Shown here: positions 1,151 to 25,400 of the stretch, in pieces | Layout: every line of letters begins with the position of its first letter | How positions within the stretch are numbered: the stretch's first letter is position 1 | NCBI GenBank assembly: GCA_024704765.1 | Contig: JAKMXF010000340.1 | Location: 1 to 64,000, forward strand | DNA: 64,000 nt | From: Oopsacas minuta | Taxonomy: Eukaryota; Animalia; Porifera | Direction: 5' to 3' | Made by a program: the position numbers and the translations under genes | The notes under the pieces: model-generated | What the model was told of the DNA's origin: nothing | Database searches by the model: none | The model's input: the letters and a program-made list of their open reading frames with translations, nothing else

Positions 1151-3944
1151 ATGGAGAGCAACCAAATCTATAGCTCTATGGATGATGCACAGGATGATTG
1201 CACTATATTTGTTGTCGCCATTGAGGATAATGAGACTTCTATGAGATTGAAATTGAAAGGAGAATATTCATTGAATATTGTAGACAGTGGTCTATTTCTG
1301 CTCACACTAAACACAGAGCAAACATTATACCACTGGCCTTATACAGTGCTCAGAAGATATGGCACTTCCAAAACTGGTAAGTATTACTTCTAGTTCCATG
1401 AATTCTGCTAATTGTCTCATTCAACTTCTGTTATATCGAACCTCAAGGACCCGCTATAATTACTATTTCGAAATATCCGTATTCCATATGACGGAAGTGA
1501 CTGTAATATATTCTTTCTACAGGATTCACGTTTGAAGCTGGTCGTAAAAGCCATTCCGGGCCTGGCGTATTGAGATTCGCCTCTCCCTCTGGGAAGCTAA
1601 TAACTCGTAATATCAAAGAAACTGTGAACAGAATAAAAGGAGATATTCCAACTCCAAATTCTGATCATCATAATCTGGGATCTTCTCACAATGTTAGTTT
1701 ACTTTCTTAATTTTCCTATTTATTTTATTTCCCTCTTTTATTAGTCAAATAGCTTCAGTGAACCAATAAGCGGTGATTACACAGAATTTTCTCATACAAC
1801 AGGACGGCCCAATCGTGCTAGGCCTAAACTTCCAGAATCAAACAGAGAGCTGTCACTAGAAATACCTGGACATTACATGAATTATAACAGGTTTCCCAGT
1901 TGAATACTATTTTGCCTAATAATATATTTATACAATAAACTCCCGTTACAACGAAGTCATTCTTTATCCTTTATAACTTGAAAGTAATTCATTTCTTCAG
2001 AATTCACTATAATTTGATATAGAATCACCGGGAGCACTACCCCTCATTCAGTTACAATACCGCATCAAACACAAACCCCCAGACCTGTATCTCCTTACCA
2101 TAACACTAGTATGAATAGTATGGTGTCTCCGTATGGAATAACTCGAGACAGACCTGCATATAATACAGTTGGTATGAGAATTATATAATTATACTACACA
2201 GATATATAAATATGATATACTTTATGTTACAAATAGGAAATAATGCAATTCTGATGGACAGTTATTCAGAGATATCCTCCTTACCGCCTCTACAACCTCC
2301 TACATCCTTGAACATTAATCAGAATGTTCAGTTACCATCTCCTCGCGCTGGGACACCAAATATTCTACAAACTAATCCTTTCGCTCATATTTCTCCTACA
2401 ATTCCTCTTCCTTACAATAGTATGAAGAGATCTATCCCTACAGATACAGCACGTACTACTGAGATGTTACATAAGTCATGTAGTGTAAGTTAAACTATCA
2501 CTGAATTACTACAGTCAACTACCGTTATATCGAACTCAGCTTATATCCACCATATATAATCTATGTATACTCTATATTAGAGCCCTGGTAGTACATTTCC
2601 TACTTGTGTGTCTCCCTTGCCTGGTTTTGATTCAGGAGATGACTCCGGTGAAGAAATAGAACATAACGTTTCTAAGAAGATTTCACAGGTTTGCACCCTA
2701 GTAACCTGGATACAGCATAGTTATGCTATATATTTAGGCATCTACATCTGTTAACGAGTTGACAGCTAACTTAGATCTAACACCTGCACACAGTACTGGG
2801 TTACAGGACTATGTTAATCTAGACGAAAATAGTCTTAATCAGCTGATCAGGACTGTATCTAATCCTATGGAGAGTCGAAGTGAGTATTAATTAAATCAGT
2901 ACATATTCTTATAACCGGTATAAGCATACAGGAATATGTAAGAATCGTTTCCCAGAGGATGATACTTACATCCGGTACGCTCTTATAACCGGTATACTTA
3001 ATAAAAAAAGAAATGGATCACAGGCCATGGTTCTCATACGATATGTTCTTATATGCGATATCCATTGTAATTCCTACTAAATATTAGCTGTAGAATCAGT
3101 AAAGAGTCCTAACTATATGAATGTAACCAGAAGTACTCCCAGAGATGATTCTGATTACTATAACATTACATCTGTTAGTTTGTTTTCCAAAATTATTGTG
3201 CATAAATAGATTGTATTAATATTCGAATTTTCATATTCTTTAGGAATTTATCGAGGAAGAGCGTAAAAGATCTAATACAGACACAATCTCACCTAAACTA
3301 TCTTTTCAAATGGAAGGAGAAGATGATTTTAAATTTGATCTGACTGCAGGGGCAGCTAGTCTCTCAGGAATTCAAGATCTCAAAATTATAGAAGAAGATA
3401 TGTTGTATGGAAATGTACAATATCATCCTTCTAGTAAAAAGAAACACTCAGAACATCTTTATATGAATACACCCACTAAGACAGCGGCATTCAAGAGTGT
3501 CAGAGGTATATTACAAACAGGGTACCAGGGACACCAGAAATGATACCCCGTTTGTGGAGGTTTAATTATATGGGACTAATAATTCCCTCTTTGATTGATT
3601 TTTCACTTCGTTTTAACTGTGAATGCTTAATATTATTTTACTACCATGGATATTTATACCCTTTAGAACACAGATCAACTGAGGAAATTCACAAAAATAC
3701 TCTAAACAATTCAGCTGTAAATAACTCAGCCTCTCTAACACTTCCTCCTTCTCCCACCAAATCCTGTCTAGGTGCTTCTAACTCCCAGCCGTCCATTACA
3801 ATAGGTAAGTCGCGGCTAACTAAGGAAAAGCCTATTTCATCTCAATACAGCTTTCTACAAGACATACTACCAACTAGTCCTAAGGTCCCACATGCTTATA
3901 CCCCTTGGAAAGATATAAATACTGAAAATAAAGATAGAATCTAA
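1151..3944 (+). CDS. Multi-exon DOK/FRS2-like docking protein with an IRS-type PTB domain and a long Tyr-motif tail; 5' end uncertain
   Basis: Exon 1149-1377 splices (GT 1378, AG ~1521) to give LYHWPYTVLRRYGTSKTG|FTFEAGRKSHSGPGVLRF, the IRS-PTB signature. Downstream P/S/T-rich exons carry YxN motifs. Stop at 3944. Confidence 0.8.
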
Positions 3945-4213
3945 TTGTGTGATAAACTGCTGAACTGTTTGCTTTTGATTGTTGTATATATTTAAGGCTT
4001 GCTTGTACATATGTATTATTAAAGTATTATTTTACCTAAGAACATGTATAATTCTATTACATAAGATTTCCAAACGTTAAGTGTCAAACTAGATCTCTGT
4101 ACAGACAAACAGTAATGAAGAAACACAAATAGCAACTTCTAACAGAGAATTTAGTTATTTAAATCTGTATTTCAAAACTAATTCTTAATTTCTCTGTTCT
4201 TCAATCTCTTCAT

Positions 4214-7200
4214 TCATAGAGCTGTAGTCTCACTAGGTTGTCTCTGCATCTAATAATTATATAAGATGACGTCATAAATATAAGAATAAACATATATATC
4301 AGGATTCCCAATAATTACCTTAGGGCTCTTGACAACTTTCTCTTTCTTAATCTTAGGACTCTCTATAGCATTGTTATTATTACTGTTAGGTGAGAGATCT
4401 GTTTGAGTCTCAAACTCTCTCTTTTGTTGTTTAAGAATTTCATTTTCTTCCTGTAATTCTCTAAACTTGTCAGTCATAACATTCAATTCCTGTAAATAAT
4501 AAGAATAAATACAAAGTTATGTAGAGTTGTATCGAAAATATTCAAATAAAATTTCCAGAAAAATATGAAAAATATAGAATTTTCGATGTAGCATATTTTC
4601 GGTAATTTCGCAATTATTTACAGATATTTAAGATAATATATAACCTGATGGAGTTGTACTGTTAAATCAGTTTGATTAGTCCCATCAGGGTTAGCTTGAT
4701 TAGATTGTAGCAACTTTATCAACTAAATACCGTATATAGAATAACAACAAGTAAACAAATAACCAACAAACAAACAAACAAACAAACAACTAACATGCTG
4801 TGCGTCAGCTAGATCTTTCTTGTATCCCTGAATAATCTCAGACATTCCAAACAATGACTAAATTACAAATAAATAAAACATCAACAACAACAACAACAAT
4901 ATATATAATGATAATTACGTCATTCTCTGCTTGCAAGCTGTTTGTCCGTTCCATCTGATCAGAGCTCTGTCTCTGAGTGCTAGCTAGATCATGTTCTAGT
5001 TTATCTTTCCTCTGAGATATACTGTCCATTTGGTAGGTAAGCTCCTGGATCTCTGAATCTCTCTTCTACACAGATAACAATTAATAATGACGTCATTCTA
5101 TTAATACTAGAGTGGATCCTCCACAAACGAGGAATTTTGCAGATAATTACCTTGAGTGATTTCTCCAATTCTGGTACTACAGATTTCTTCAGAGATTCAG
5201 TCTCTTGATTCAAATTCTAATCAATAATACATTGAATATACAAAGAATAAATAGCGTTAAAAAGATTAAACTAACCTCCAATAGCTGCTGTGAGTTAGAC
5301 AATTCATTTTCCTTCTCTCCAATAATCATTTCCTTATCTAGAGCTCTCCTCTGTTCTACACTTAACTCTCCTTTAAGTCTAGTGAATTCCTGCTCTACCT
5401 GATTTTGTAGTAAAAGAATTTCTTCTTGCTATAAGCAAATAATGTATTCATGAATACTCAACAGAGTATAAGGAAATACAGTCAAATCCCGAAATATAGC
5501 AATTAACATATAACAGGAGCTGACTGTAGTTAAAAAGATATGACAGGGATCTCGCTTACCGTCTCCTTTATAGTCTTCTTCAACGTTTCATTCTCCTCTG
5601 TTTGTATCTTATCCCTAACTAATAAATCCTTTACTTTCTCTCTCTCCTTTTCAGCCTCTATACCAGACTCATTCAATGCCTCAGTATTGGTTTTATTATC
5701 TTCCTCTAATCTGTATAAGTAATCAGTAGCAGCTCCCTTCATCTTACCCAGCCAATCCTCAAAATCCTAAATACAGTATGTACCGGTTATAAGGACCTAC
5801 TTGGGAGTAGCAATATATGTTCTTATAACCGACATACATATACATAAATATATGAGAACCTTATTCAGGAGGATGATACTCATATATGTTCTCTATTTCT
5901 ATTCAGAAATATAATAAATTACCTGTCCATGAGCTCGTAGATTGGGGAATATTTGTCCGGAGAATCCCTAATAATATGGAGAATGACGTCATAATATTTA
6001 GAATTATATAGTAAACCAGGGATATCAAATTTCTTAGACAAAAGTATAGTCAACTCCCGTAATATAGAACAGGAATACCCACTTATAATTATATACGGCT
6101 TATAAGAGAAGTTTCGATATAAGGGAGTTGACTGTAGCTGTATTTACAAAGTATGTTATACTAAAATACCTGTATTTGTTGGTGTGTAGATTTAGAATCT
6201 TGTTCGGCAGATTTACGTGCGTTATCAATATCATCGTTAATTTTCCAAACATTCTCACGTAATTCCTAAAACAAAAAACAAATTATAACAAAGAATAAAA
6301 CAAACTAATTTACTCAAATCTTACATTATTCTTCTTTTTGAATGTATCTAATCTTTCTTGAATAATTGTATTCGTTTCTAAACTCTGAGCTAATTCTTCC
6401 TCCTTCTTTTCCAGCTTAGATTCTAGCTCTGTGAATGAAAGTTTCATCTCCTGTAAAATATAAGCGAGTGTATATTTCCATGAATTAGCGAGTTAGTAAT
6501 ATGATGACGTCATAAATAATGGTATAATGATAATGAAATGCCGCCTGCCCACATGCTTAGACGTACATCATGTGGAGCTTAACAAGTTACCAACCTCTAT
6601 AGTAGCTTGCTGTATCGCATGATTACTAGCTAGATCAGCTACAGACGAATCATCTAAACCAGAACTTTCATTTCTAGCCTGTAGGATATCATTCTCAATT
6701 TGTAGATCCTGTGTCTTCTGTTTAAGATCTTGAAACTCATTCTAAACAACACAGGACATAAATAAAGAATGCCCATATAAGTATGAATTATGACGTCATA
6801 ACATACCATTATGTCTCCTATATCATTCACTTTCTGTTGTGACTTCTCTACTAATGCAGTTAATCTGTTTATTTGAGTCTCTTTCTCTGATAGCTCAGAT
6901 TGCAGCTGTTCTACTTCAGTTGCAGGTACACTATAGATAATATACAGGTAGGTGAGTATAACAAATAGGATAAGGTGATGATAATAGAAGATGTATGACG
7001 TAACGTATTTCCTGTAATAAAATTTAATAATAATAATGTGGTTGTGTGTAAACTATCAGGAAATTCACAGTTAGAAATATTCGCAAATATTAACCTTTCT
7101 TGTCTTAGTTTAAACATTTCAGAATTTAGAGATTTAATAGAATCTTCCCAATCTTCTAGTTGAGTATTCAGCTCTCCTATCTTCTCCTCATACTCAGTAA

Positions 7201-11907: not shown

Positions 11908-14900
11908 TTAGGTAAGGAGTTTGCCTAAGTCAAAACCTATAGTCTGGCAACACGTAATTTGATTTAATTAACTAACCTATAAAATGATTGAATGCGGAAT
12001 CACTCAACACAACCTCATTCACACAAGTACTAGCTCTAACTCTACGTCCGAACAAGAAAGCAAATCCAGAATGTAACTCAGTTCGATATATGATATCAAG
12101 TTTTGATCTTTGTACAGTTAAACAGCCTTGTTGTTGTGTGAATGTGAATAGGATATGAGCTAGTAGGAATGCTGGTAGGAGAATAGCGAATACAAATCCG
12201 AAGCATAACAGGAATAGTAGCAGAACCTATTCGAGATTGTATATATTTATATGTGCATCTAGGCAACCTCCTAATATCAAGTTTTATCAGTGACTGATAT
12301 TAGCGGGTATTTCTAATCTCTATGATAATATGCACGATATTTATTTAGAAATACAAGCTTATAGCACAAATAATCCTAAATAATTGCTTACCCAATTAGT
12401 ATTTGTAAATACAAACTCATTTTCATAATTAGATATCCCAGACTGTATTAACAGAGCAATAGAAGATACAAACAGTCTATTCGTACCAGTATACATATCA
12501 TTAAAGTAATTCTGCTGTGGTATACAAGTACTAGCATTAGCTACACCCTGTATAGCGTCCTGTTGTATCAATAAATGTCCTGATAGAACAAAAGCAAGTA
12601 CACAGATTGATAAAAGAACCAAGAAGGGAGGCAGAGACTATAAATAGAAGAAACATGTATAAAATCAAGCTTTCAAAATATCGACAAAGGAAAAATGCTC
12701 GATATTGATAGATATCGAGATATATTGGCGAATTTTCCTATATTTTCGATCTTATAAAATCATACTAAACTATAAGTATCAGTCAATAGAAATATTACCT
12801 GGAAAGTTGCTCTTAGAATCCGTAACAAATAGCTATAGAAGCAAGGAAATATTTTAGAATACTCTGCTAGTAACAGATAAAAGAACAATAGAGATAGAGC
12901 AGCAAACGTCCATTGAGAACTAGATATTCCTAATCTCATCATGAAGAATAAGAACATGAAAATGAGAGAGAAGAATGATAAGAATCTGAATATATTTGAG
13001 AAGTATGATATTATAGCACAGAACAGACCGCGAGTAAATGCGTTAAGTTTATACCAGCAAACAAATCGCATATGTCTGTTACCTATAAATATTGTACTAT
13101 AAATCAGAAACATGTAAGAACCCTATATTACTATACAAGGAATTGTATAAGAACCCTATATTACTATATAAGGAATTGTATAAGTGCACTGAATGACCAT
13201 ATATGGAATTATATAAGAGCCCTATATTGAGATATAAGGAAATATGGACATCAAAATTCTTATAACTCACGTTTCGTGGCTCTGTGTGTAAACTTCACAA
13301 TTCTATACGCATTAGTAGTCTCAACAAGATATGTAGCAGTAGAAGGACTGCACTTATTAGATGGGGTATATCTTCCACGTAGAGGGTCCCACTCAATCAA
13401 GAAATTCAGCACCTCATACGCGATATAAACAACAAAATAAATACCAATTATAATCTCTGAGATAAGCCGGAATGGATCATTAGCGTAATTGAACAGATCT
13501 GCATCACAGTAGTAGCTAGCTCTGTGTAGAGCTAGAGTATAGAATATCAGGAATATTATATACACAATAGATCCTAATACGAATAGACCTCTGTAATATG
13601 GTAGTTTATATGATACAGCAGCGGCTACTGTAGGATGATACACAATGTCTTGATCCGGACATGTAGCTATCTTGTGTAGGAGAGATAGATCAGATTCCTG
13701 ATAGTCGGGATTTGTAGGTAGAAGGCCAGTAGAATCTGAATCCAAATATGAAGTTTGGAGTATTACTATAATAGAAATACAACTGTAAAACGTTGTATAG
13801 ATGAAAATATAACAAACAAGGGAAATATCGATTAGATATTTAGAGAATAGGAAAATTTTGAAAATTTCGGAAAAGAATATCCAACTTCCAAACTTTCGAT
13901 ATTTTTTCGTGTCAGATATACTTTGTAACAAACCTTTATCCTGATTACACTTCAGCATAGTATCCATTGCGGTTTTTAACGAACCAAACAATTGCTTGTC
14001 TAACATAGAATGTAACAGAGCTTTATTATCCTGGAAGTATTCAGGATCTCTCAAATGTTTGAGCAGCAAATTTAACATTTCCTCACTCTTCTGATCAAGA
14101 GTTAGCTCAAATACAGATTTCTGTAATGTAACCGGAAAAGTCTTAGCAGATTCTTTGGTAGAGAAAATAGTAGCTTTTCTTTCAAATAATTGAAAATGTA
14201 TAGCAGTTTGAGAGCAAGATTTAGTCAATCTTCTCAGTAAATAGCTCAAAGAACCAATAGAATTATAAGTCACTACTTTGTGTAATAGTGATCCAGTCTG
14301 TCTACCGGATTGTAGTATATCTTGATTTGAGGTTAGTAGCTGAGATAGCAATTTGTTTCTATCCAATCTTACAGCCAAATCGACTACAAATAAATATTCA
14401 ATTAATTAATAGTAAATACACAAAACTTATGGATGATACTCAAAGCTTAGCACATCTGCAATACATTCATCTGATATATAAGAATGTCTAGCCGACAGAC
14501 TGGGAGTTCATGGACAGAAACTACAATTATTTATACTAAGTGCTATATAATACCTAGAGAATCAGTATTATCAGCTTTACTATGAGCTAGCAGTAGAGCT
14601 AATAGCTTATCATTATCTTTCTCTATCACCAAATGTAGTAAACTATTGACTGTTGATTTATCTACAAATAGAAACAACATAATTACACACAGTTCGATAT
14701 AACGGGAGTTGAATGTAATGTTGTTTATACCTTTACTATGTGGAATAGGAATACTAGCATCAGCTCCTGACGTCAGTAACAGCTCAGTAACAGAGTAATG
14801 TCCACCATTAACAGAATAGAATAATGGAGTATATCCTGAGCTATTGAGCTGGTTAGCATCCATTCCTTGTTCCGTTAAGAAGAAGTTAACCATCTGATCA

Positions 14901-17695
14901 TCTCCTCCAGAACAAGAAGCATGAAGTGCTCCTAACAGAATCATCAGTTAATATATATATACTAGAGCGTGCTCGATAATTTTCGTTATGTCCTCACCTA
15001 TCCTATTAGCAGCAGTTAATTCTTCTCCATTAACTCTAGCATTGTACTGTAGTAATAACTTAACGCATTCTATGTGTCCGTTCTGTGCTGCCATCTCTAT
15101 AGCAGTACCTGTACATTCTGATTCACTAGCTGAGTTCTTTAGGATCTGATAAGTATTGTTATGTGTTAATTAATGCGGTTAATGAGTATATTGTATTTCA
15201 TAATACAAATGTACATATGCATTATTACTGTATTAGGGTCGATTACTTTACTATTAATTACGATTATGACAATTACAACGATTACTTATGAGGGATAAAA
15301 CGAGTTTTTACTTCTAAATACAACTTAGAAATTACATTAGTTAATAAGCTATTAACTCACAATTTCAGGGTCAGCATTTTTCTCTAATAACATAGCAGTA
15401 ATCTCCTTATTACCAGCTCTACAAGCCTGCATTAGTGGTGTATGTCCTAGACTATTAGCTGTGTTTGGTAATGCTCTTTCCTCCAATAGGATATCTATTA
15501 TAATAATTATTACATGAAATCAATGTAAATATAACTACTTTAACTTGGATAACAAAAGATATCCAAGGAGTCTTGGAAAGCATGTAGTTACACAATTCAA
15601 ACTTATAAATAAGCGAGGAAGTTGACTATATCTCAAATTTTTACTGACCTGTCAACAAAAAATTGTTGTTATTTACAGATACATGCAGTAGAGTAGATTG
15701 GTGTGTGTATTCAGTAGAATTCAGCTCATAATAAGGTAATAATAGTTTAATCATCTCAACAGAGTGTGATAGAGTTATCGGCATTGCTCCTGTAGGGCTC
15801 TGGTTAGTAATAGCATCTTTCAATCCGACTATAGAATATAAAGAAAACTAAGATCACAATCTGTGCAGACTGCAAGTATATGAATTAGGGACTTTATAAT
15901 GTAGAATAAGAACATATAGTGCAAATCTAATGAAGTTCAATAAATAAACTATGCTGTCCGCACAGCTTGGAATTTTCGAGTTTTCCAGGTCATTTGCCTA
16001 AAAGCTATGAAAATGATTCTTTAATCTATTATAGTTTCGGCTATCACCGTCTACGGATAAAAATGATTTCAATATTTTGGTCGGTACAGTTTACACTCTA
16101 TAAAGTACTCTGAATTAATACAAATATTCATTTGTGTTACGACTAACTTTTGCTCTCCTGCAGAGGCTCGGTGTCAAGAAATGCACCTATAAGTGCTCGA
16201 ATAGTATCTACATCGTCCATACGACAAGTCAGATGAAACACAGTCTCTCCCTCTATATTAACGAGACTGTAGTTACATAATCCAGTACGTAACAGTAGAT
16301 TAACTCCCTCTCTATTCTGATTTTGTATAGACAAAGCTAATGCTGTCGTGTTAGTGTTATCTCTAGCGTTTATGAGCGTTATAGCTGTGGCATTGTCTGT
16401 ACTGACTATAGAGTCAACTATTACCTGAATATGGTGAGTTATCATTAGCAGAATATTGAATGAGAAAGAAATGCAAACAATCATGCAATTGGTAAATATA
16501 TTCTACAACCATGTACAGGTTGCTAGATAATGTGCATACAAAGTTCATCCAGCAATGTCATACTCAAGTCATGCAATGAATCAAAGTTATGTCATTTATT
16601 GTTAAAAGTCCATGCTATAAGTCCGAAGTTAATGAACTTACTTCCATACTCTCAGTTTTACAAGCAATAGCTGCAGAATGCAGCATAGTAGAACCATTCT
16701 TATCTCTCTGCATCAAATCAGCATATCTAATAATCTTCCTTGCAATCAAATGCTGTAGTATTTGAGGGGAAGCTTGTGTAGCTGCTAAATGGTATAAACA
16801 GCCTCCCTCTGACGTCAGTCCTCTCTGTAGAGGTGTGAATATAGATTGAGAGAGACAAGCTTCTAGCAAGACTGTATCAGTTGATTGTAAGCTCTTTATT
16901 ATTATTTCAAATCTGTAATACAAAGTTATTATCACTTATATAGAAATGAACCGCCAATGGACATATACATCCCAAGTTGTGAACAGCTGACTTAGAGAAT
17001 ACATGTTTCGTTTATTATTGTTTATCTACATAACTTACTTTTCATTTTTGCTAATGTTATTCTTATCAATAATAACCAATGCTTTCTTCTGCACAAACTT
17101 CTTCTCAGCATCCTGTACAGGTTTCCATACTTGCCATTGTTCGTATAACCCAGCAGCTTCTGTAGCTAAATACAGATCACCTTCTATCAGGTCAAATCCT
17201 GCTAGTTCTTCTTCACTGAGCTTCAGGCCTGATACCTGAAGTAATGATATGATAAGGAGGGAGTAATTATAGAAAAGTATAGTTAATAGCAGGAAATACA
17301 AGGTTTATGTATTAAAATTACAATTGCCATCAACTGTAATCATTTACACATTTTGCTGTAATCAAATTATTATATGAGAGTGTAGGTTCTAGTAATTATA
17401 ATCGTCTTTGCAATTCCTTCAAAAATACATATATTTTGTAATTGTAATCACCTGAAAGTAATCGTGTAGTGGCTTATAAGGCAACATATCCTATTAGCTA
17501 TTATTCCATTACCTTAACTAGCTGAATGCCTTTAATAGCAGTCGTCTTATCCTTCACAGCAGCTACGTCATTAGCAGTAGCCTCTATAGGAGGAGGAGGG
17601 AATGATACAGGTATTTGTTCTACTGTGATATCTGATATCTCTGGAGGAGGAGGGAGATCTTGATCGGTAGGGGGGATATGTATGTAATCAGCCAT
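11908..17695 (-). CDS. TRPA-like ankyrin-repeat 6TM cation channel, multi-exon
   Basis: About a dozen ankyrin-like repeats across exons 16935-14543 (e.g. GYTPLFYSVNGGHYSVTELLLTSGADA). Pre-S1 IVYHPTVAAAVSYKL resembles TRPA LLxHPLVxxYLxxKW. Hydrophobic S1-S6 segments in exons 13620-12100. Both termini are approximate. Confidence 0.75.
13110..13230. repeat. Intronic minisatellite, ~35-bp unit (TAAGAACCCTATATTACTATAYAAGGAATTGTA), 2 good copies and 1 degenerate copy
   Basis: Direct repeats visible at ~13116, ~13150 and ~13213. Confidence 0.75.
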
Positions 17696-18601
17696 TCAGC
17701 AAACTATATGGAATATTTGTATTATAAACGGTTGCTATACAGCGGAAGTTATGGCAAATTTTTATGCATTATAAATTCATAATTATATGTTTTGTGAAGT
17801 TTCAGCGAACTAATAAATATATTTTCATTTTCAATTTCACTTCTATCAATACAATTATTACGGTCCATTGAGCTTTAATGATAACGAAAGTTAACAGTTC
17901 GTATTTCATATTTAACTTTAAAAATACATTCTTTCTTCATACCTAGCATAATTCTCGGTATAGTATTGGATATTATGGGAATGCGTTACGACTGCAGCAA
18001 ATGTATAATAAAGTCTAAATAATACAGTTTAATTAATAAATTCTATAAATATAGAAACTAAACCATTAGTTAGATTATCATTTAGATAACAAAGCTTAAT
18101 ATTAAAATAATTATACATTCTATCTTCCTATATACTCAAAGAATGAAGTAAGAGGAGGTGCTGTCATTCAATAGTTTAGAACACGAGAAGGTATTTGTGT
18201 AAAGAAAGTAATAACTGGGATGTACTAGTGTAATATGATTAGGATATAGCTTAATATTATGATAGATATGCAGTTTGTATTTAATTGCAAATAGAAAGTT
18301 TGATAATTCATTTTGAGGATAAAGTCATTTGGCTGCAGGAATTCAAAGCAGAAAATAAAGCATATGCTGGTTATAAGAAAAGCCTTGCGAGTAGCAATAC
18401 ATGGTCTCATACCCGGTATAAATATATAGGAGTATATGAGAATTGATTGGTATTACTCCAAATAAAGCGAACGAAATATGACAATCAGTTGACATTATTA
18501 GAAATTTCTAAATAAAAGGTGTTTTGTTTAATATATGTAAAACAAACAACAAAGAAATTAATAACAAAAAATATTCAAATATTCAAACAAAAAACGATTA
18601 A

Positions 18602-20513
18602 TCATATCTTCGAGTAAGTGACTAAAAATACAATAATCGCGAAAAAAGTCGCGAGAAAGAATAAAGAAATAAAACTTGATCTGACAGTAACATTAAACAA
18701 TCGTACTTTATACGTAATAGAATTTGCATACAAGAAAAACTGATTAATCTGTTCATTCGTAGAATCTTTATAGCGAAACAAATACACACCAAAAGTCATA
18801 TTTTTCAATTTCGTGAATTCCGTTTGTACTCTCGCGGCCATTATCAGGGGAATTGCAAGTGCGGTTATCCATAATACACAATCAAAAACTAAATAAACAA
18901 TCTGTAGCGGATGTTCAACCTCCTCAACATGCCTAAACAACCTCACAACCTCAACCCCGTCAATAAACAAATAAATAATAATTGAAATAAGACATAAACT
19001 GACAGAATTCGCAGCTTCCCTATTCAACCGACCTAAATACGTTTTACACATGTACATATCCCGCATAGCAAATGATAACGAAGTAGATTTCTCCTGCAGA
19101 CCCTGTTTAATCCCGCGAGCTAACGAGATAATCAGCACACATTGCGTAGTGTAATGTAGAATCAAAATAATGAACACAAGCCCTGTAGCAACCTTCAATA
19201 CAACTGCTCCACTAATATTAAGGACTAACGTCAGAATATTGATTGTACTGGAGTGATCTATCTCACAATGCACGTATAATACAATGTAAATAACCTGCTC
19301 GATACATATCAACAACTGCCATATAATACACAGTAACCCTATCAGCAATAGGCTATATAGGATATTCCTATTTAACACTAGCACATGTTGACACCTGGCT
19401 GCCAATACAAACGCCATTTCCATTAAAGAATCTATATTCTCATTGGAATTAAATCTGAATGAATACAGTGCGTAGAGATACGCAAGAAGATGCAAGAAGT
19501 ACGGGATGAAGAATAAGGATAACATATGTTGGCAGTGGAACGGCTGAGTAATGTTTGTATCATTAGTCACTTCATTAATGTATTCGGGTGAATTCCCGCC
19601 CGCACCATTCTTACACGCGTACACAGACGCGATGTATAGCATGATCAAGAAAGATATTATGAACATTGGGTAGAGGATATTGATTAGTTTTTGTAAAATA
19701 TTCTGCTTAACACTCTGTGAGAAAAGTCTCTTCCATCCAACCAAGCATAGAGTTATGAGGTATGGTCGTAGAACTGTTTTTCTAACCAAAAAAGGAAAAT
19801 ATAAACACATTGAGATATTACAAGAAATCTCTATATTCACCTTACCTACAATAATCCAATGCTTTCACTGTTGCAGTTTCAAACCTCCCGCTATGAGATT
19901 CGTTATCAGGTATCTCTACATGTACAGGTCCTTCTGAATACCTGCTGGTGTCCGAGTTACTACTGTACCTAATTGGAATGTTCAAAATAAAGTACATCTG
20001 ATTTAAGTGACACTATTGGAGGCACAATACAATGTAAAATATAAACACAATATACATAGTGCCTTAAATTTAGAATTTGTTGTATAATCTCGATTTTGCT
20101 GTCGGCACCAGTTGCAAAAATTTGTTATATTTAGCTATCAATTATTTACCATGAGAATCCATTATGTCTATCAAGTATCTTACTACGCTCAGTTAACTGT
20201 GCTGACATGAATCTAGTGAGATGCTCCTCTCTATCTGAGAAAATAGCTTTAGGACATCGATCTGTATCGGCTAGGGTAGTAGAGGATTCAGGAGGAGAGA
20301 AAGAAGGTCTAGATGTCTATTAAAATAACTTAGTAATATAAAGCAATTCTCTGAGATCATATTTATACAATAACTGACTTCGATATAACAAGAGTTTACT
20401 ATACTTACTTTATTGGAGACAGAATGACTCCTTTCCCTCTTCCTTGGAGTATTAGAAAACTTCATTTCATTATTGTTATTTTCCGGTGGAATTGTTTGAG
20501 ATCTTTTATGCAT
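18602..20513 (-). CDS. Gustatory-receptor-like 7TM ion-channel family (GRL/7TMIC) candidate, GrlHz-like; 4 exons
   Basis: Three short 5' exons splice into ...LDYCR|KTVLRPYLITLCLVGW.... Seven hydrophobic segments follow, with a long TM4-TM5 loop and a GR-like C-terminus (QINQFFLYANSITYKVRLFNVTVRSSFISLFFLATFFAIIVFL). Confidence 0.6.
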
Positions 20514-21175
20514 TTTTTAAATGTTTAAAGCTAATATGAATCGAAAATCTATTAAATATAAAAGCAGTTTCTGCCTAATCGGCTTAGCAAACCATTAAAG
20601 TGTCGAGAAACAGTTGGATAATATAAATCGCCAGATTCTCAAAAGAATTCTATTAATCAATAAAGTGTAATGAAAACAGAGTATATTCCAGAAATATAAT
20701 ACAAATCATGCTTGCTATGTTATTTATATTCTTATTAATGTATTAATTCAGAATTTATTAATATTCAAATTGCATTTGTTTCTACAAATTAGTATTAATA
20801 AAGCCTTATACACATCTATGCATTGCATACGGTAGAATTGTGTAATACGTAATACTCCAAATGCAATTGCATTTGCAATGAATTTAATGAAAGTTAACTT
20901 GAATGCTGATGTCCAGTTCATGCGAAAGATTAATCTCAAAGTTAGTAGTTTTGCCAAGTTCTTGCGATAAGTGAAAGTTACTGCTAAAGCCAATATTTGA
21001 TCTTAGATCTATTGCTGGCAATTCTGGTTATACTCTATAGAATATTTCCAGGATATAGTATTCTACTATCATTGCATTTATCTACCAAGATATCGCAATA
21101 CATTTCCCACAAACAAACTCAAACAATTAATACATAACATATCCTCTACTGAAATCTCTAATGACTAACACAAAC

Positions 21176-22251
21176 TCAATCTACTTCCATTTTATGCTCT
21201 GTAACACTGACAACATCGAACTTAATCTCCCTAACTTTAGTCTCTAGTACAGCAGTAGTCCCTTGCTTATAACTGTAATCTCCCTGTCTAACGCCTTTTG
21301 AACAAGCCTCCTTATACGGACGTATATAGTCTACTCCTCGGCTAGTTATAACACATAGATCTACGTTAGATCCTGAACCCAGATCGTTAAATATACCAGC
21401 TTGTATAGCCTCGCTGACCAATTCCTTAGCTGCCTCCATTGACATACCTGTAGTGAGATGTATAGATAAGGGAATTGATCATAATATCATATTTAACGTC
21501 ATCATGCATCTTTATGTGTGCTATCTACATATCTATATTCATCGCAGTTAACAAGTATAACTCACCAGGTTTGTACTGAGTCTCAAATGTAGCCATAGCA
21601 GCTAGACTACCACTTCCCATACTAACATAGGGTAGCTTATCAGTAGATCCAGCAGCATGTACTGTATACAGATGAGCTCCTGTACAATCAACACCCCCCA
21701 GTACTAAATAAGCACCAATATATCCACCATAACGGGATAGCATCTGCTTAAGCATTCGTAATGCAGTTTGTACTCTAGCTTGCCTGCCTGTGTTGAGTGA
21801 GTGTAGGCGTATTTTACTGGATATTAAGTCTGTAGTCTTCTCAGTGTCAGCAGCAGTACCTATTGTGTCATATATAATATAATTGTCAAGGGTGATCAGG
21901 CAGAAAATGGATAAGGAGATGGACAACAGGAATGTGTCATAAATCCATAAACTAACCAGCTCCGCAGCAATACATATTATCAGCGAGATAATGTATCTTC
22001 TCACAATTCTTATCAGCTACAACCTCTCCCTCAGTAGCACGTGTATCAGCTCCCAATACAACCCCACCATCAAATACTATACCAGCAATAGTAGTACCAG
22101 TTTTAACTGCAATCGGAGCTTTGAAGCCTTTGCTTATCAAATATTGATTACGGAGACATAAGTCGAACTGGAAACCTGGGTAAGGAAGGTCAACTGAGAT
22201 CGGTTGTTGAGCTCTATCAGAGCTGGATTGTTGTTCACGAATAGCAAGCAT
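21176..22251 (-). CDS. PSMB7: Proteasome subunit beta type-7 (beta2), multi-exon
   Basis: KTG|[23 protein letters not shown] with the catalytic N-terminal Thr, plus [12 protein letters not shown] and [17 protein letters not shown]. Confidence 0.97.
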
Positions 22252-22448: not shown

Positions 22449-25400
22449 TCATTTGCTAACTGTTGATTTCTTCTGCTTTTTGAAAATAGAATATTGAGAT
22501 TGTTCAGTGAGATTTGTAATTTGTAATTTTAGATCATTTATTTGGCAGTTTGATTCACAAAGTTCCAATTTAGTCTTAGCTAATTCCATTTCTACTTCCT
22601 GTAGTCTGTCAGCATCATTTACTATGTTCTGTTCTAAATCAGAGTCTGTAGAGTTATGTGTAGTTGTCTTAGCTAATTGGGCTTTTAACTGTAGAGAAAT
22701 ATGATAAATTAAAATCACAGGTTGCCCACTGCGGCAGTTTTGGGAGAAGCGGTTGTGTCATATCTCAAATATTTACTGGTAAATCAGTAATTAACAAACC
22801 TCAATAACTTGATTCTTAAGATCCATAATCTGTGCCTGATGACTCTCATCCATTCTAGCTAGAATATCCTTATACTCAGCTAGTGTATGTTCAGACTGTT
22901 GCTTATCAGCTTCATAGCGATGTATCCATGTAGCTAGATGACTTTCTCTCTCTTGAAGGTCCGTTACCGTTGATGATAATTCTGTCCGTAATTCTCTGAT
23001 TGTAACATGACATTGTCTAGAAAAGTGGAAAAGAATAGAGAAAAAGTTCAATAATGATATTTAAGGAACAAGTAGTACAATATTATATATCTCTACATTA
23101 CCAGTACACAGATTTATATAATAGACATTACCCTATATCCTTGCTTTTCTTATCAAGTTTATCCTCCAACAAATCCATCTCATCTCTCAATTTAACTTTA
23201 GAATCAACCAATTCTTTAGCTAATTTATCATTCTCCTGGTGTAACCAACCATTCTCCTCTCTCAGCTGTCTAGACTGTCTCTCTAGCTTTTGTGTAGGAT
23301 CTTCTACAGTGTCTTTCTCTAGATTAACTGCTGAATAGTCTCTTTCGTATTTCTTTAGCTTTTTAAGCGAAATCTGGAGAGTATACACATTCAAATACAG
23401 TATACTCCACTGGTTAACATAGCCAGCACTGTTTATAGCGGCCATTATATATAGATGTGAGCTACCATCTTTGACAAGTCCCTTGAATGGCAGTCATTTG
23501 TTGATTCCACAGCAGGGCTGGACCCACCGTGGGTGTTCTGGGCGTACGGACACCCACTACCGAGAAGTACTCTTACGTTACAGTCTATGTGATCAGAATT
23601 ATTGTCTATGATGACCGATACCAAACAGCTCAAATAGTCACATCCAATATATATATATAATGAACACTACTAATATATAACGGCCATTTTGGACAGTCCA
23701 TCAGTAGTCGTTATAGCAAGTCTGACTTTACATATAAAACTTACCCTCATGGAGTTAGTAGCCAAATCCACCAAATGTTGACACGCAGCATTATCAAGAT
23801 ATTTAATAGGCAAGGTAGCTCTGAAAAACTGTAGAATTGATTCAAAACCGAGAGAGAGTAATTCGCGCTGTGAGTCTTTGAGAAGAGCCAAAGCAAAACT
23901 GAACATAGTTTGATCTAAATAAACAAATGTAGAACTGATATGCAGTCAATTTCTATGATATACTGAACTCCGATTACTTTGAGCTTCGAAATAGCGGAAT
24001 TCTATTAAACACAACTCAACTGACCTAATCCTTCAGCTAAGAATATATCAAACACTCTATAAGCTAAATTCAGTGGGAATTTGGCAGCAAATACAGTAAG
24101 GAACCATTGACTAGCATACATATGTGTTTCAAGACCAATATCCTTAAAGTGTTGTGATATTCCAGGTAAGTATTCTTCTATAGCACAGTCTAATTGGTAG
24201 AATTTCATTTGTAGTATCTATAATAATAGAATAGATTCAATCAAACAAAATAACGAAAAAGCCAATCTCGATAATTCGAATATATTTGAGACTTTCGTAA
24301 ACTACTCACCTGTAGCCCTGGTTTAAAGACTTCTCTCAGCTCGTATTCACACATAATCTTAACTAACACAGCAAAAGATTGCTCTTCAGGGAAATGTAAT
24401 AACAGTACAGCCATAATGAATGAGAATCCTTGACAGTATCCAATCTCTTTATCGTATAGAGAGTATGCTGTTGATAAGTTGAGTAGTAGCTTGTGATTAG
24501 TCTTGTCTCTGTTAACAATAATCAAGTCAAAAATTACATCCGTGCCGACAGCATAGCAATTGAAAATACATCAACCATGTGACGTCATAATATCATAAGA
24601 TACCTGAAAAACTCGTGAGCAGTGAATGTCCTCTTGATATCCCATTCTATTACGGGATCAATATTACCTTCATGTTGTACCATGAGTAGTCTGTATATCT
24701 CTGACAGCTCTTTGTCATCTAATACTTGTGTTAACATCTGCCATACAAGAACTCTATACTTCTCAGGAATACCTAAAGTAGGTCTAATATTAAGAGCTGA
24801 ATTTTGAGGAAAATGGTGTCCAAAATATGATTATTAGCTATTCAACCATGGATGGCATAGTTAAACTCGTTTTCACCAATGAAATTCCAATAACAAGGTT
24901 AAACATTCTGTGGAAACTACAATGCAATTTTGACAAGGTGCATAAACTAAATCCAGCATCCATGGTTAAAATCGAATAAGCACTGTTATAAGGCTGAAAT
25001 GTATGAGTATTCTACATACGAAAAGGCTTAGCTCATACCTTTCCTAACTAGCTTAATAAGTTGTTTAGGTCTCTCCTTTTCTTTCCAATTCCAACGATCT
25101 AACAGTACTCTCCAATCATCCAATACTTCATCTGATATCTCTGTGCAAACCTGTGTAAATGATACAGTAAACATAGTTATTAGAGGCCATGGATAATATA
25201 CAAAAGGATCTTTCTATATTACTTTAATAAGCGAATTCGGATCAAGGATAAGAAGTATTATGACCTTAGAAATATAGTGCAAGGCTTGAGATCACCGACC
25301 TTATTCTACTGGACCATGGATTAGTACTTTAAATTATTTATGAAACATTATTATTTCAATTAATTCATGGTTCAAATTAATGATCAAGCCTTATAATTCG

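Follow-up and report, generated by a model that had tools for sequence, protein, structure and literature searches.

We analysed a 64,000-nucleotide stretch of the genome of the glass sponge Oopsacas minuta (contig JAKMXF010000340.1, positions 1 to 64,000; hereafter the window) and found that LOD99_8664, a minus-strand locus, is very probably a transcribed four-exon gene under purifying selection that belongs to the GrlHz branch of the seven-transmembrane ion channel (7TMIC) superfamily. GrlHz (GrlHolozoa, or Gustatory-receptor-like Holozoa), represented in Drosophila melanogaster by CG3831 (UniProt Q9W1W8; Benton and Himmel 2023, eLife 12:e85537), was described in 2023, and demosponges, placozoans and unicellular species are represented in the published data. 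A preprint of the same year counts sponges among the lineages in which earlier sequence screens saw no 7TMIC. The Oopsacas gene had already been annotated, and the UniRef entry for its product (A0AAV7JFR3) bears the name 'Gustatory receptor'. What is new is the assignment of the glass-sponge protein to GrlHz, the verification of its gene model and the presence of GrlHz in all four sponge classes, as seen in Amphimedon (published), Oscarella, Sycon and Oopsacas; a literature search found no paper joining 'Oopsacas minuta' with 'gustatory receptor'.

The window is eukaryotic in composition and AT-rich, with a G+C content of 31–38% along its whole 64-kb length. A preliminary description of this DNA had placed a gene at 18602–20513, and that location was borne out. 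A minus-strand open reading frame (ORF) of 412 codons (18602–19840; local G+C 33%) is preceded by shorter coding pieces, and the complete gene, read on that strand from an ATG at 20513 to a stop codon at 18604–18602, comprises four exons with GT-AG introns throughout and 1572 coding bases (524 codons). Its product of 524 amino acids is 100% identical to KAI6647590.1, listed at NCBI as "hypothetical protein LOD99_8664 [Oopsacas minuta]" and retrieved by a word search with exon 4. The exon-by-exon translation matches this database protein (P0001) in full, and P0001 was used for all whole-protein analyses. A tblastn search detected no paralogues of the gene within the window.

Four sequencing runs, none of them recorded as RNA, contain this stretch, and their contigs were compared over positions 18400–20700. 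Contigs from three of the four runs are unspliced and have Nextera adapter ends. In the remaining run (X4), one contig of 1999 nt omits 19782–19845, 19969–20149 and 20317–20408, all of which begin with CT and end with AC on the plus strand. These segments coincide exactly with the three predicted introns, so LOD99_8664 exists in a spliced form, and the annotated model is right. A 412-codon frame at 33% G+C, homologues outside the glass sponges at E-values of 1e-30 to 1e-40, and a ratio of non-synonymous to synonymous substitution rates (dN/dS) of ~0.06 together place the gene far beyond chance: it is a genuine, spliced and conserved gene.

At its 5′ end, the X4 transcript graph (window 20503–20532, minus strand) branches at the AG at 20532–20531. 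One branch, a 51-nt contig of depth 53, runs upstream into 21 letters that are not from the window, in mRNA sense AAATCTTCATAAAAAACTTAC, and the other, a contig of depth 22, runs upstream into genomic sequence. The 21-letter leader occurs nowhere in the 64-kb window and could be either a distant 5′ exon or a leader added by trans-splicing. Another glass sponge, Aphrocallistes vastus, reportedly has a trans-spliced leader of ~37 bp (PMC10282587).

The word search yielded only four close relatives, all from glass-sponge ENA assemblies (P0002–P0005) and 65–80% identical. One of them (P0003) is encoded on a 315-kb contig (L001), where its neighbour is a proteasome beta-subunit gene, just as in the window; upstream of its shortened gene call, tblastn located conserved sequences that correspond to exons 2 and 3, at 4996–5160 and 5373–5561. 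Because of the shared neighbour and these upstream counterparts, we regard this gene as the syntenic orthologue from another glass sponge. The gene calls of all four relatives begin at or past the LRPY motif described below and are incomplete models rather than shorter proteins. Across 386 aligned exon 4 codons, comparison of LOD99_8664 with its L001 counterpart gave a dN of 0.16 and a saturated dS of 2.7, and the resulting dN/dS of ~0.06 indicates that the gene is under purifying selection.

As the word search had left the family open, a wider search was needed, and we built a HMMER profile from the five glass-sponge sequences for an exhaustive protein search. This profile retrieved 160 proteins at E≤1e-3 (81 at E≤1e-10), mostly 430–570 amino acids long and matched end to end. 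Named matches comprise the sponges Oscarella pearsei (7e-40) and Sycon ciliatum, the animals Saccoglossus, Lingula, Anneissia, Centruroides and Owenia together with spiders, a chiton, a millipede and an acoel, and the unicellular holozoan Syssomonas. Of ten matches that could be named, three (E 1e-29 to 1e-32) are part of the GrlHz set curated by Benton and Himmel 2023. Lingula XP_013411847.1, Anneissia XP_033117936.1 and Centruroides XP_023209572.1, which our profile matched at 5.8e-32, 1.1e-30 and 3.5e-29, respectively, all fall in the ingroup of their GrlHz consensus tree (PMC9998090 supplements). The file 'GrlHz-Dmel-CG3831.fasta' (PMC9998090) contains the same Lingula protein along with the Saccoglossus LOC102807715 protein and Trichoplax XP_002111738.1, and Amphimedon is represented there by XP_011406043.2, among others. 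Four Amphimedon queenslandica sequences, Capsaspora and Sphaeroforma are also in that study's GrlHz trees (Figure 3-figure supplement 1); the main text of the study is silent on sponges, which appear only in the supplementary trees and FASTA. With profile matches sitting in both the published tree and the CG3831 FASTA, the product can be assigned to GrlHz at the sequence level, homology to CG3831-type proteins being judged via members of the published set rather than CG3831 itself. The GrlHz-like identity proposed in the preliminary description is thus supported.

The membership is also visible in shared motifs. A family signature, C[KR]xx[VI]LxPY...GW, which we derived from the profile matches and which is not a published definition, is present in LOD99_8664 as CRKTVLRPYLITLCLVGW. 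Among 57 family members, its columns C131, P138, Y139, L143, G147 and W148 are conserved at 82–95%, and the C[KR]xx[VI]LxPY pattern occurs in about half of all profile matches, in line with the earlier suggestion of an RxxLRPY start shared with GrlHz. Other sponge sequences carry the same motif ahead of the first transmembrane (TM) helix, as CKKTVLSPY in Amphimedon, CKQKVLKPY in Sycon and CEKTVLKPY in Oscarella. A second shared N-terminal motif, hxVEIxD, lies ~20 residues upstream of the LRPY signature, and the corresponding exon 3 motif is also found in Oscarella, Saccoglossus and others. The Oopsacas protein keeps 36 of the 43 positions that are conserved in ≥75% of non-hexactinellid family members, and it resembles the family in its length class (450–550 aa), its disordered cytoplasmic N-terminus, its predicted 7TMIC fold and a holozoan range that includes sponges. 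It differs from the published family in being only 18–26% identical to members from outside the glass sponges and in having no WD40 domain, which some GrlHz proteins carry. We also computed a quick maximum-likelihood tree of 62 family members, drawn from family matches only and without an outgroup, for which the tool warns of long-branch effects. There, the five hexactinellid sequences form one clade (SH-aLRT 100%) on a branch of 1.77 changes per site, which sets them apart from other sponge GrlHz sequences; this clade stands beside Oscarella and a bilaterian subclade, placed without resolution, and Sycon falls in the other main subclade.

An AlphaFold2 single-chain model, calculated from the 62-sequence alignment, reached a mean predicted local distance difference test score (pLDDT) of 79.5 and a predicted template modelling score (pTM) of 0.77, with blocks of the membrane core mostly above 90 in pLDDT. 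Both the seven hydrophobic helices and the long soluble N-terminus recognised earlier were recovered, the latter as ~117 residues (1–117) modelled as disordered. Three fold searches gave concordant results. In a Foldseek search against the Protein Data Bank (PDB), as had been proposed in the preliminary description, the top 23 matches were all chains of insect gustatory receptors (Gr), odorant receptors (Or) or Orco, with a probability of 1.00 and target-normalised TM scores of ≤0.75; rank 24 was a weaker OR5-Orco chain, and scores beyond it dropped to noise. The similarity to Orco has a Z-score of 25.5, and a value of 22.5 was reported for fly GrlHz against Orco (Benton and Himmel 2023, eLife 12:e85537). 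Folds of G-protein-coupled receptors (GPCRs) and transporters, which had been named as outcomes that would contradict the assignment, were ruled out by the exhaustive fold scan. Computation thus shows a predicted Or/Gr-type 7TMIC fold, in which a pre-TM1 helix precedes the seven TM helices, TM4–6 extend far into the cytoplasm and TM7 is split into TM7a and TM7b.

The model is collinear with solved Gr43a (8jm9/8zdz), BmGr9 (8vc2/8uvt), Gr64a (8jme), MhOR5 (7lic) and Orco (6c70) over ~350 residues, at a root-mean-square deviation of 3.3–3.9 Å. With these insect channels it shares the long TM4–6 cytoplasmic extensions, the split TM7, a very short extracellular C-terminus and a probable cytoplasmic N-terminus; it differs from them in its identity of 7–12%, in lacking a Pfam 7tm_6 or 7tm_7 match and a Gr TM7 motif, and in an extra N-terminal cytoplasmic region of ~120 residues. 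Two segments take on a different meaning in the light of the model. The segment CRKTVLRPYLITLCLVGW, which had been described as re-entrant-like, is present but is not modelled as re-entrant, LRPY being the end of the pre-TM1 helix (118–146). Similarly, the supposed long amphipathic loop between TM4 and TM5 (~351–391) is a real region but not a loop; it is predicted to be helical, as TM4 and TM5 both continue into the cytoplasm and meet in a turn of five residues, in the layout of the Or/Gr anchor domain. In solved Or/Gr channels, the TM4–TM5 cytoplasmic region, TM6 and TM7a form the anchor domain that holds the tetramer, and TM7b lines the pore. The TM4/TM5 extensions are 95–100% identical among the five glass-sponge sequences, and conservation is highest in these extensions, TM2, the helix of intracellular loop 1 (IL1) and the TM7a region, and lowest in extracellular loops (EL) 2 and 3 and the outer halves of TM3 and TM4. 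A match of the TM4–TM5 cytoplasmic stretch to filovirus VP35, obtained with the family profile against all PDB sequences, was coiled-coil-like and non-significant (E 0.089), and was dismissed as chance.

Several indicators bear on the orientation of the protein in the membrane. With helix boundaries taken from the model, lysine and arginine account for 41 of the 284 residues predicted to be cytoplasmic (16 of 125 when the N-terminus is left out), compared with 2 of the 44 predicted to be extracellular. The N-I-T sequon in EL1 has a counterpart at the N208 column in 35 of 48 family members, and the cysteines that flank it, C188 and C215, are kept in 49 of 55 and 52 of 57 members, respectively. 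Superposed on Or/Gr structures, the model runs collinear with them from its pre-TM1 helix through to its C-terminal residue. Because of this charge bias, the conserved EL1 elements and the collinear superposition, a topology with the N-terminus inside and the C-terminus outside, the inverse of a GPCR, is indicated computationally, instead of the N-terminus-out arrangement that had been listed as a possible refutation.

By analogy with the solved channels, the protein would be a cation channel of four subunits held together by the cytoplasmic anchor domain, with TM7b lining a central pore and with a gating or ligand pocket made up of the helices' extracellular halves. We see an even chance that the protein is such a tetramer, with a TM7b-lined pore gated via the outer helix bundle. 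The preliminary description had proposed a ligand-gated channel; its identity, in terms of the GrlHz family and the Or/Gr fold, is supported, and its channel activity and ligand still belong to conjecture. A general cellular role is more likely than taste-like chemosensation, because fly GrlHz is broadly non-neuronal, being expressed in heart, ovary, testis, fat body and nephrocytes and not in taste neurons (Benton and Himmel 2023, PMC9998090), and because the family occurs in unicellular holozoans. For the same reason, and given the known demosponge, placozoan and unicellular members, finding a GrlHz copy in a sponge without neurons is what one would expect.

A number of observations weigh against the assignment of LOD99_8664 to a family of channels, or against parts of it. 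Pfam gave no family match in the exons (even at E≤10) or in P0001, and found no family across the 62 relatives, the sole weak match among 62 family members being to 7tm_6 (E 0.0085). Moreover, no PDB sequence profile connects the product to Gr or Or, and the connection to channels would come from the predicted fold alone. The structure prediction covers one chain only, with the tetramer added by analogy. No experiment shows any GrlHz protein conducting ions or binding a ligand, and there is no published electrophysiology; the authors of the family state that they cannot exclude a completely different activity and that ligands are not predictable (Benton and Himmel 2023, PMC9998090). The mRNA origin of the X4 contig is deduced from its splicing pattern, the library type being unrecorded. 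Finally, given the long branch and replacements in TM6–TM7, the family-typical activity might be altered in this protein.

These points bear on the rival explanations in different ways. One is that the protein has a genuine GrlHz/7TMIC fold without channel activity, acting as a scaffold, as a handler of lipids or small molecules, or as a receptor that signals via its cytoplasmic N-terminal motif. This would fit the fact that conduction has been demonstrated for no GrlHz, the family-wide cytoplasmic motifs hxVEIxD and TxxALxxCKxxVLxPY that hint at partner binding, the WD40 propellers on some GrlHz proteins (Benton and Himmel 2023) and the glass-sponge copies without the TM7b glutamine typical of the family. 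However, the parts that make up the pore and tetramer in Or/Gr proteins (TM7b, TM7a and the TM4–6 extensions) are all present and among the best conserved, and every solved protein with the same fold is a tetrameric cation channel; we consider a non-channel function unlikely, though a serious contender.

That the protein is a canonical chemosensory gustatory receptor of the Gr/GRL (Pfam 7tm_7) type, for external tastants, is highly improbable, despite its UniRef name and despite sugar-sensing Grs being the nearest solved folds. The product has no match to 7tm_7 (PF08395), Trehalose_recp (PF06151) or 7tm_6, its relatives by sequence are the GrlHz set and not Grs, and fly GrlHz is broadly non-neuronal. 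The Gr TM7 motif is TYhhhhhQF, and TM7b here, SSFISLFFLATFFAIIVFLVTYSKI, lacks a motif of that type. The terminal FFLY...KVRLFNVTVRSSF pattern had been likened to Gr TM7, and a TM7 region does exist there, but without the Gr-type motif. Seven hydrophobic helices by themselves would fit many folds, so another seven-helix protein (GPCR, transporter, PHTF or DUF3537), an annotation artefact or a pseudogene might be imagined; we regard this as close to inconceivable. There is no Pfam match to DUF3537 (PF12056), IL1 is only ~20 residues in the model, as opposed to the long intracellular loop 1 of PHTF-type proteins, and the intact frame, spliced transcript, dN/dS of ~0.06 and syntenic orthologue speak against an artefact or a pseudogene. 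Setting LOD99_8664 apart from Gr/GRL, DUF3537 and PHTF rests on absent Pfam matches.

The glass-sponge proteins show peculiarities of their own. Family-typical residues are replaced at Q446M, R465Y, D478N, S479Q, A491V and P497T, and the family motifs LDSFLLF and AKLF have diverged to INQFFLY and VRLF. In a column near the outer end of TM7b, 34 of 55 relatives have glutamine; Oopsacas has V519, and the five hexactinellids read V, I, I, A and I. The long branch, the replacement of the TM7b glutamine and the TM6–TM7a changes, alongside a near invariant cytoplasmic anchor region, suggested to us that GrlHz could have been an ancestral, non-neuronal channel of holozoans whose function has shifted in glass sponges, an idea that we hold to be improbable. 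If it is true, and if TM7b is pore-lining as in Or/Gr, the shift would amount to a change of gate or selectivity specific to the syncytial glass sponges.

For the family as a whole, GrlHz is the one Gr-like lineage common to most animals, including lancelets, and to their unicellular relatives, and its presence in all four sponge classes supports a pre-neuronal origin and a non-neuronal ancestral role. For the same reason, sponges could be a neuron-free setting in which to find the function of GrlHz. The glass-sponge gene leaves the 2023 picture unchanged and is an ordinary member of the published family; what is gained is a gene model that has been verified and is backed by a transcript, a structural model of good confidence, an inventory of the residues conserved across the family and the TM7b changes specific to glass sponges. 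The features of the gene are collected below.

Features of LOD99_8664 and of its product, in window coordinates and residue numbers; helix limits are from the AlphaFold2 model.
Feature	Position	Strand	Residues	Remarks
5′ UTR (untranslated region), short	20514..20532	minus		upstream end is the AG at 20532-20531, where the transcript graph forks to a non-genomic leader
Coding exon 1	20409..20513	minus	1-35	ATG at 20513; followed by GTAAGT donor; intron 20317-20408 absent from X4 contig
Coding exon 2	20150..20316	minus	36-91	low-confidence predicted helix 62-82; 60% conserved in orthologous locus L001
Coding exon 3	19846..19968	minus	91-132	family-shared motif VHVEIPD...TATVKALDYC; 62% identical in L001
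Coding exon 4	18602..19781	minus	132-524	plus stop codon 18602-18604; entire membrane domain; intron 19782-19845 is 64 nt
3′ UTR	18400..18601	minus		in spliced X4 contig; position 18400 is record position 204, with 203 nt more below 18400
Family signature, end of pre-TM1 helix	19733..19780	minus	133-148	(C-R)KTVLRPYLITLCLVGW
Seven-helix 7TMIC core, predicted	18617..19699	minus	160-520	
N-I-T sequon N208, EL1	19547..19555	minus	208	between conserved C188 and C215
Cytoplasmic helical extensions of TM4 and TM5	19007..19162	minus	339-390	likely part of anchor domain
Split TM7	18617..18757	minus	474-520	TM7a 474-486, linker KVRLFNVTV, TM7b 500-520
Pre-TM1 helix		minus	118-146	
TM1		minus	160-190	
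TM2		minus	218-243	
IL1 helix		minus	247-260	
TM3		minus	265-308	
TM4		minus	314-361	
TM5		minus	367-414	
TM6		minus	423-467	
TM7a		minus	474-486	
TM7b		minus	500-520	

The neighbouring genes lie on the same strand. Directly upstream of the GrlHz gene is the proteasome beta-subunit gene (Pfam Proteasome and Pr_beta_C; 21176–22251, minus strand), and this adjacency recurs in L001, where the proteasome gene occupies 2720–4070. The downstream neighbour (13260–16935, minus strand) has several ankyrin-repeat exons (Pfam Ank, Ank_2) and a large 3′ exon (13263–14378) with many hydrophobic helices and no Pfam match; it could be a TRP-like kind of ankyrin-repeat membrane protein. Further upstream, exons of a RabGAP-TBC gene (Pfam RabGAP-TBC, E 4e-16) were found at 23670–24525 on the minus strand, with coiled-coil-like ORFs (22449–23445) separating it from the proteasome gene.
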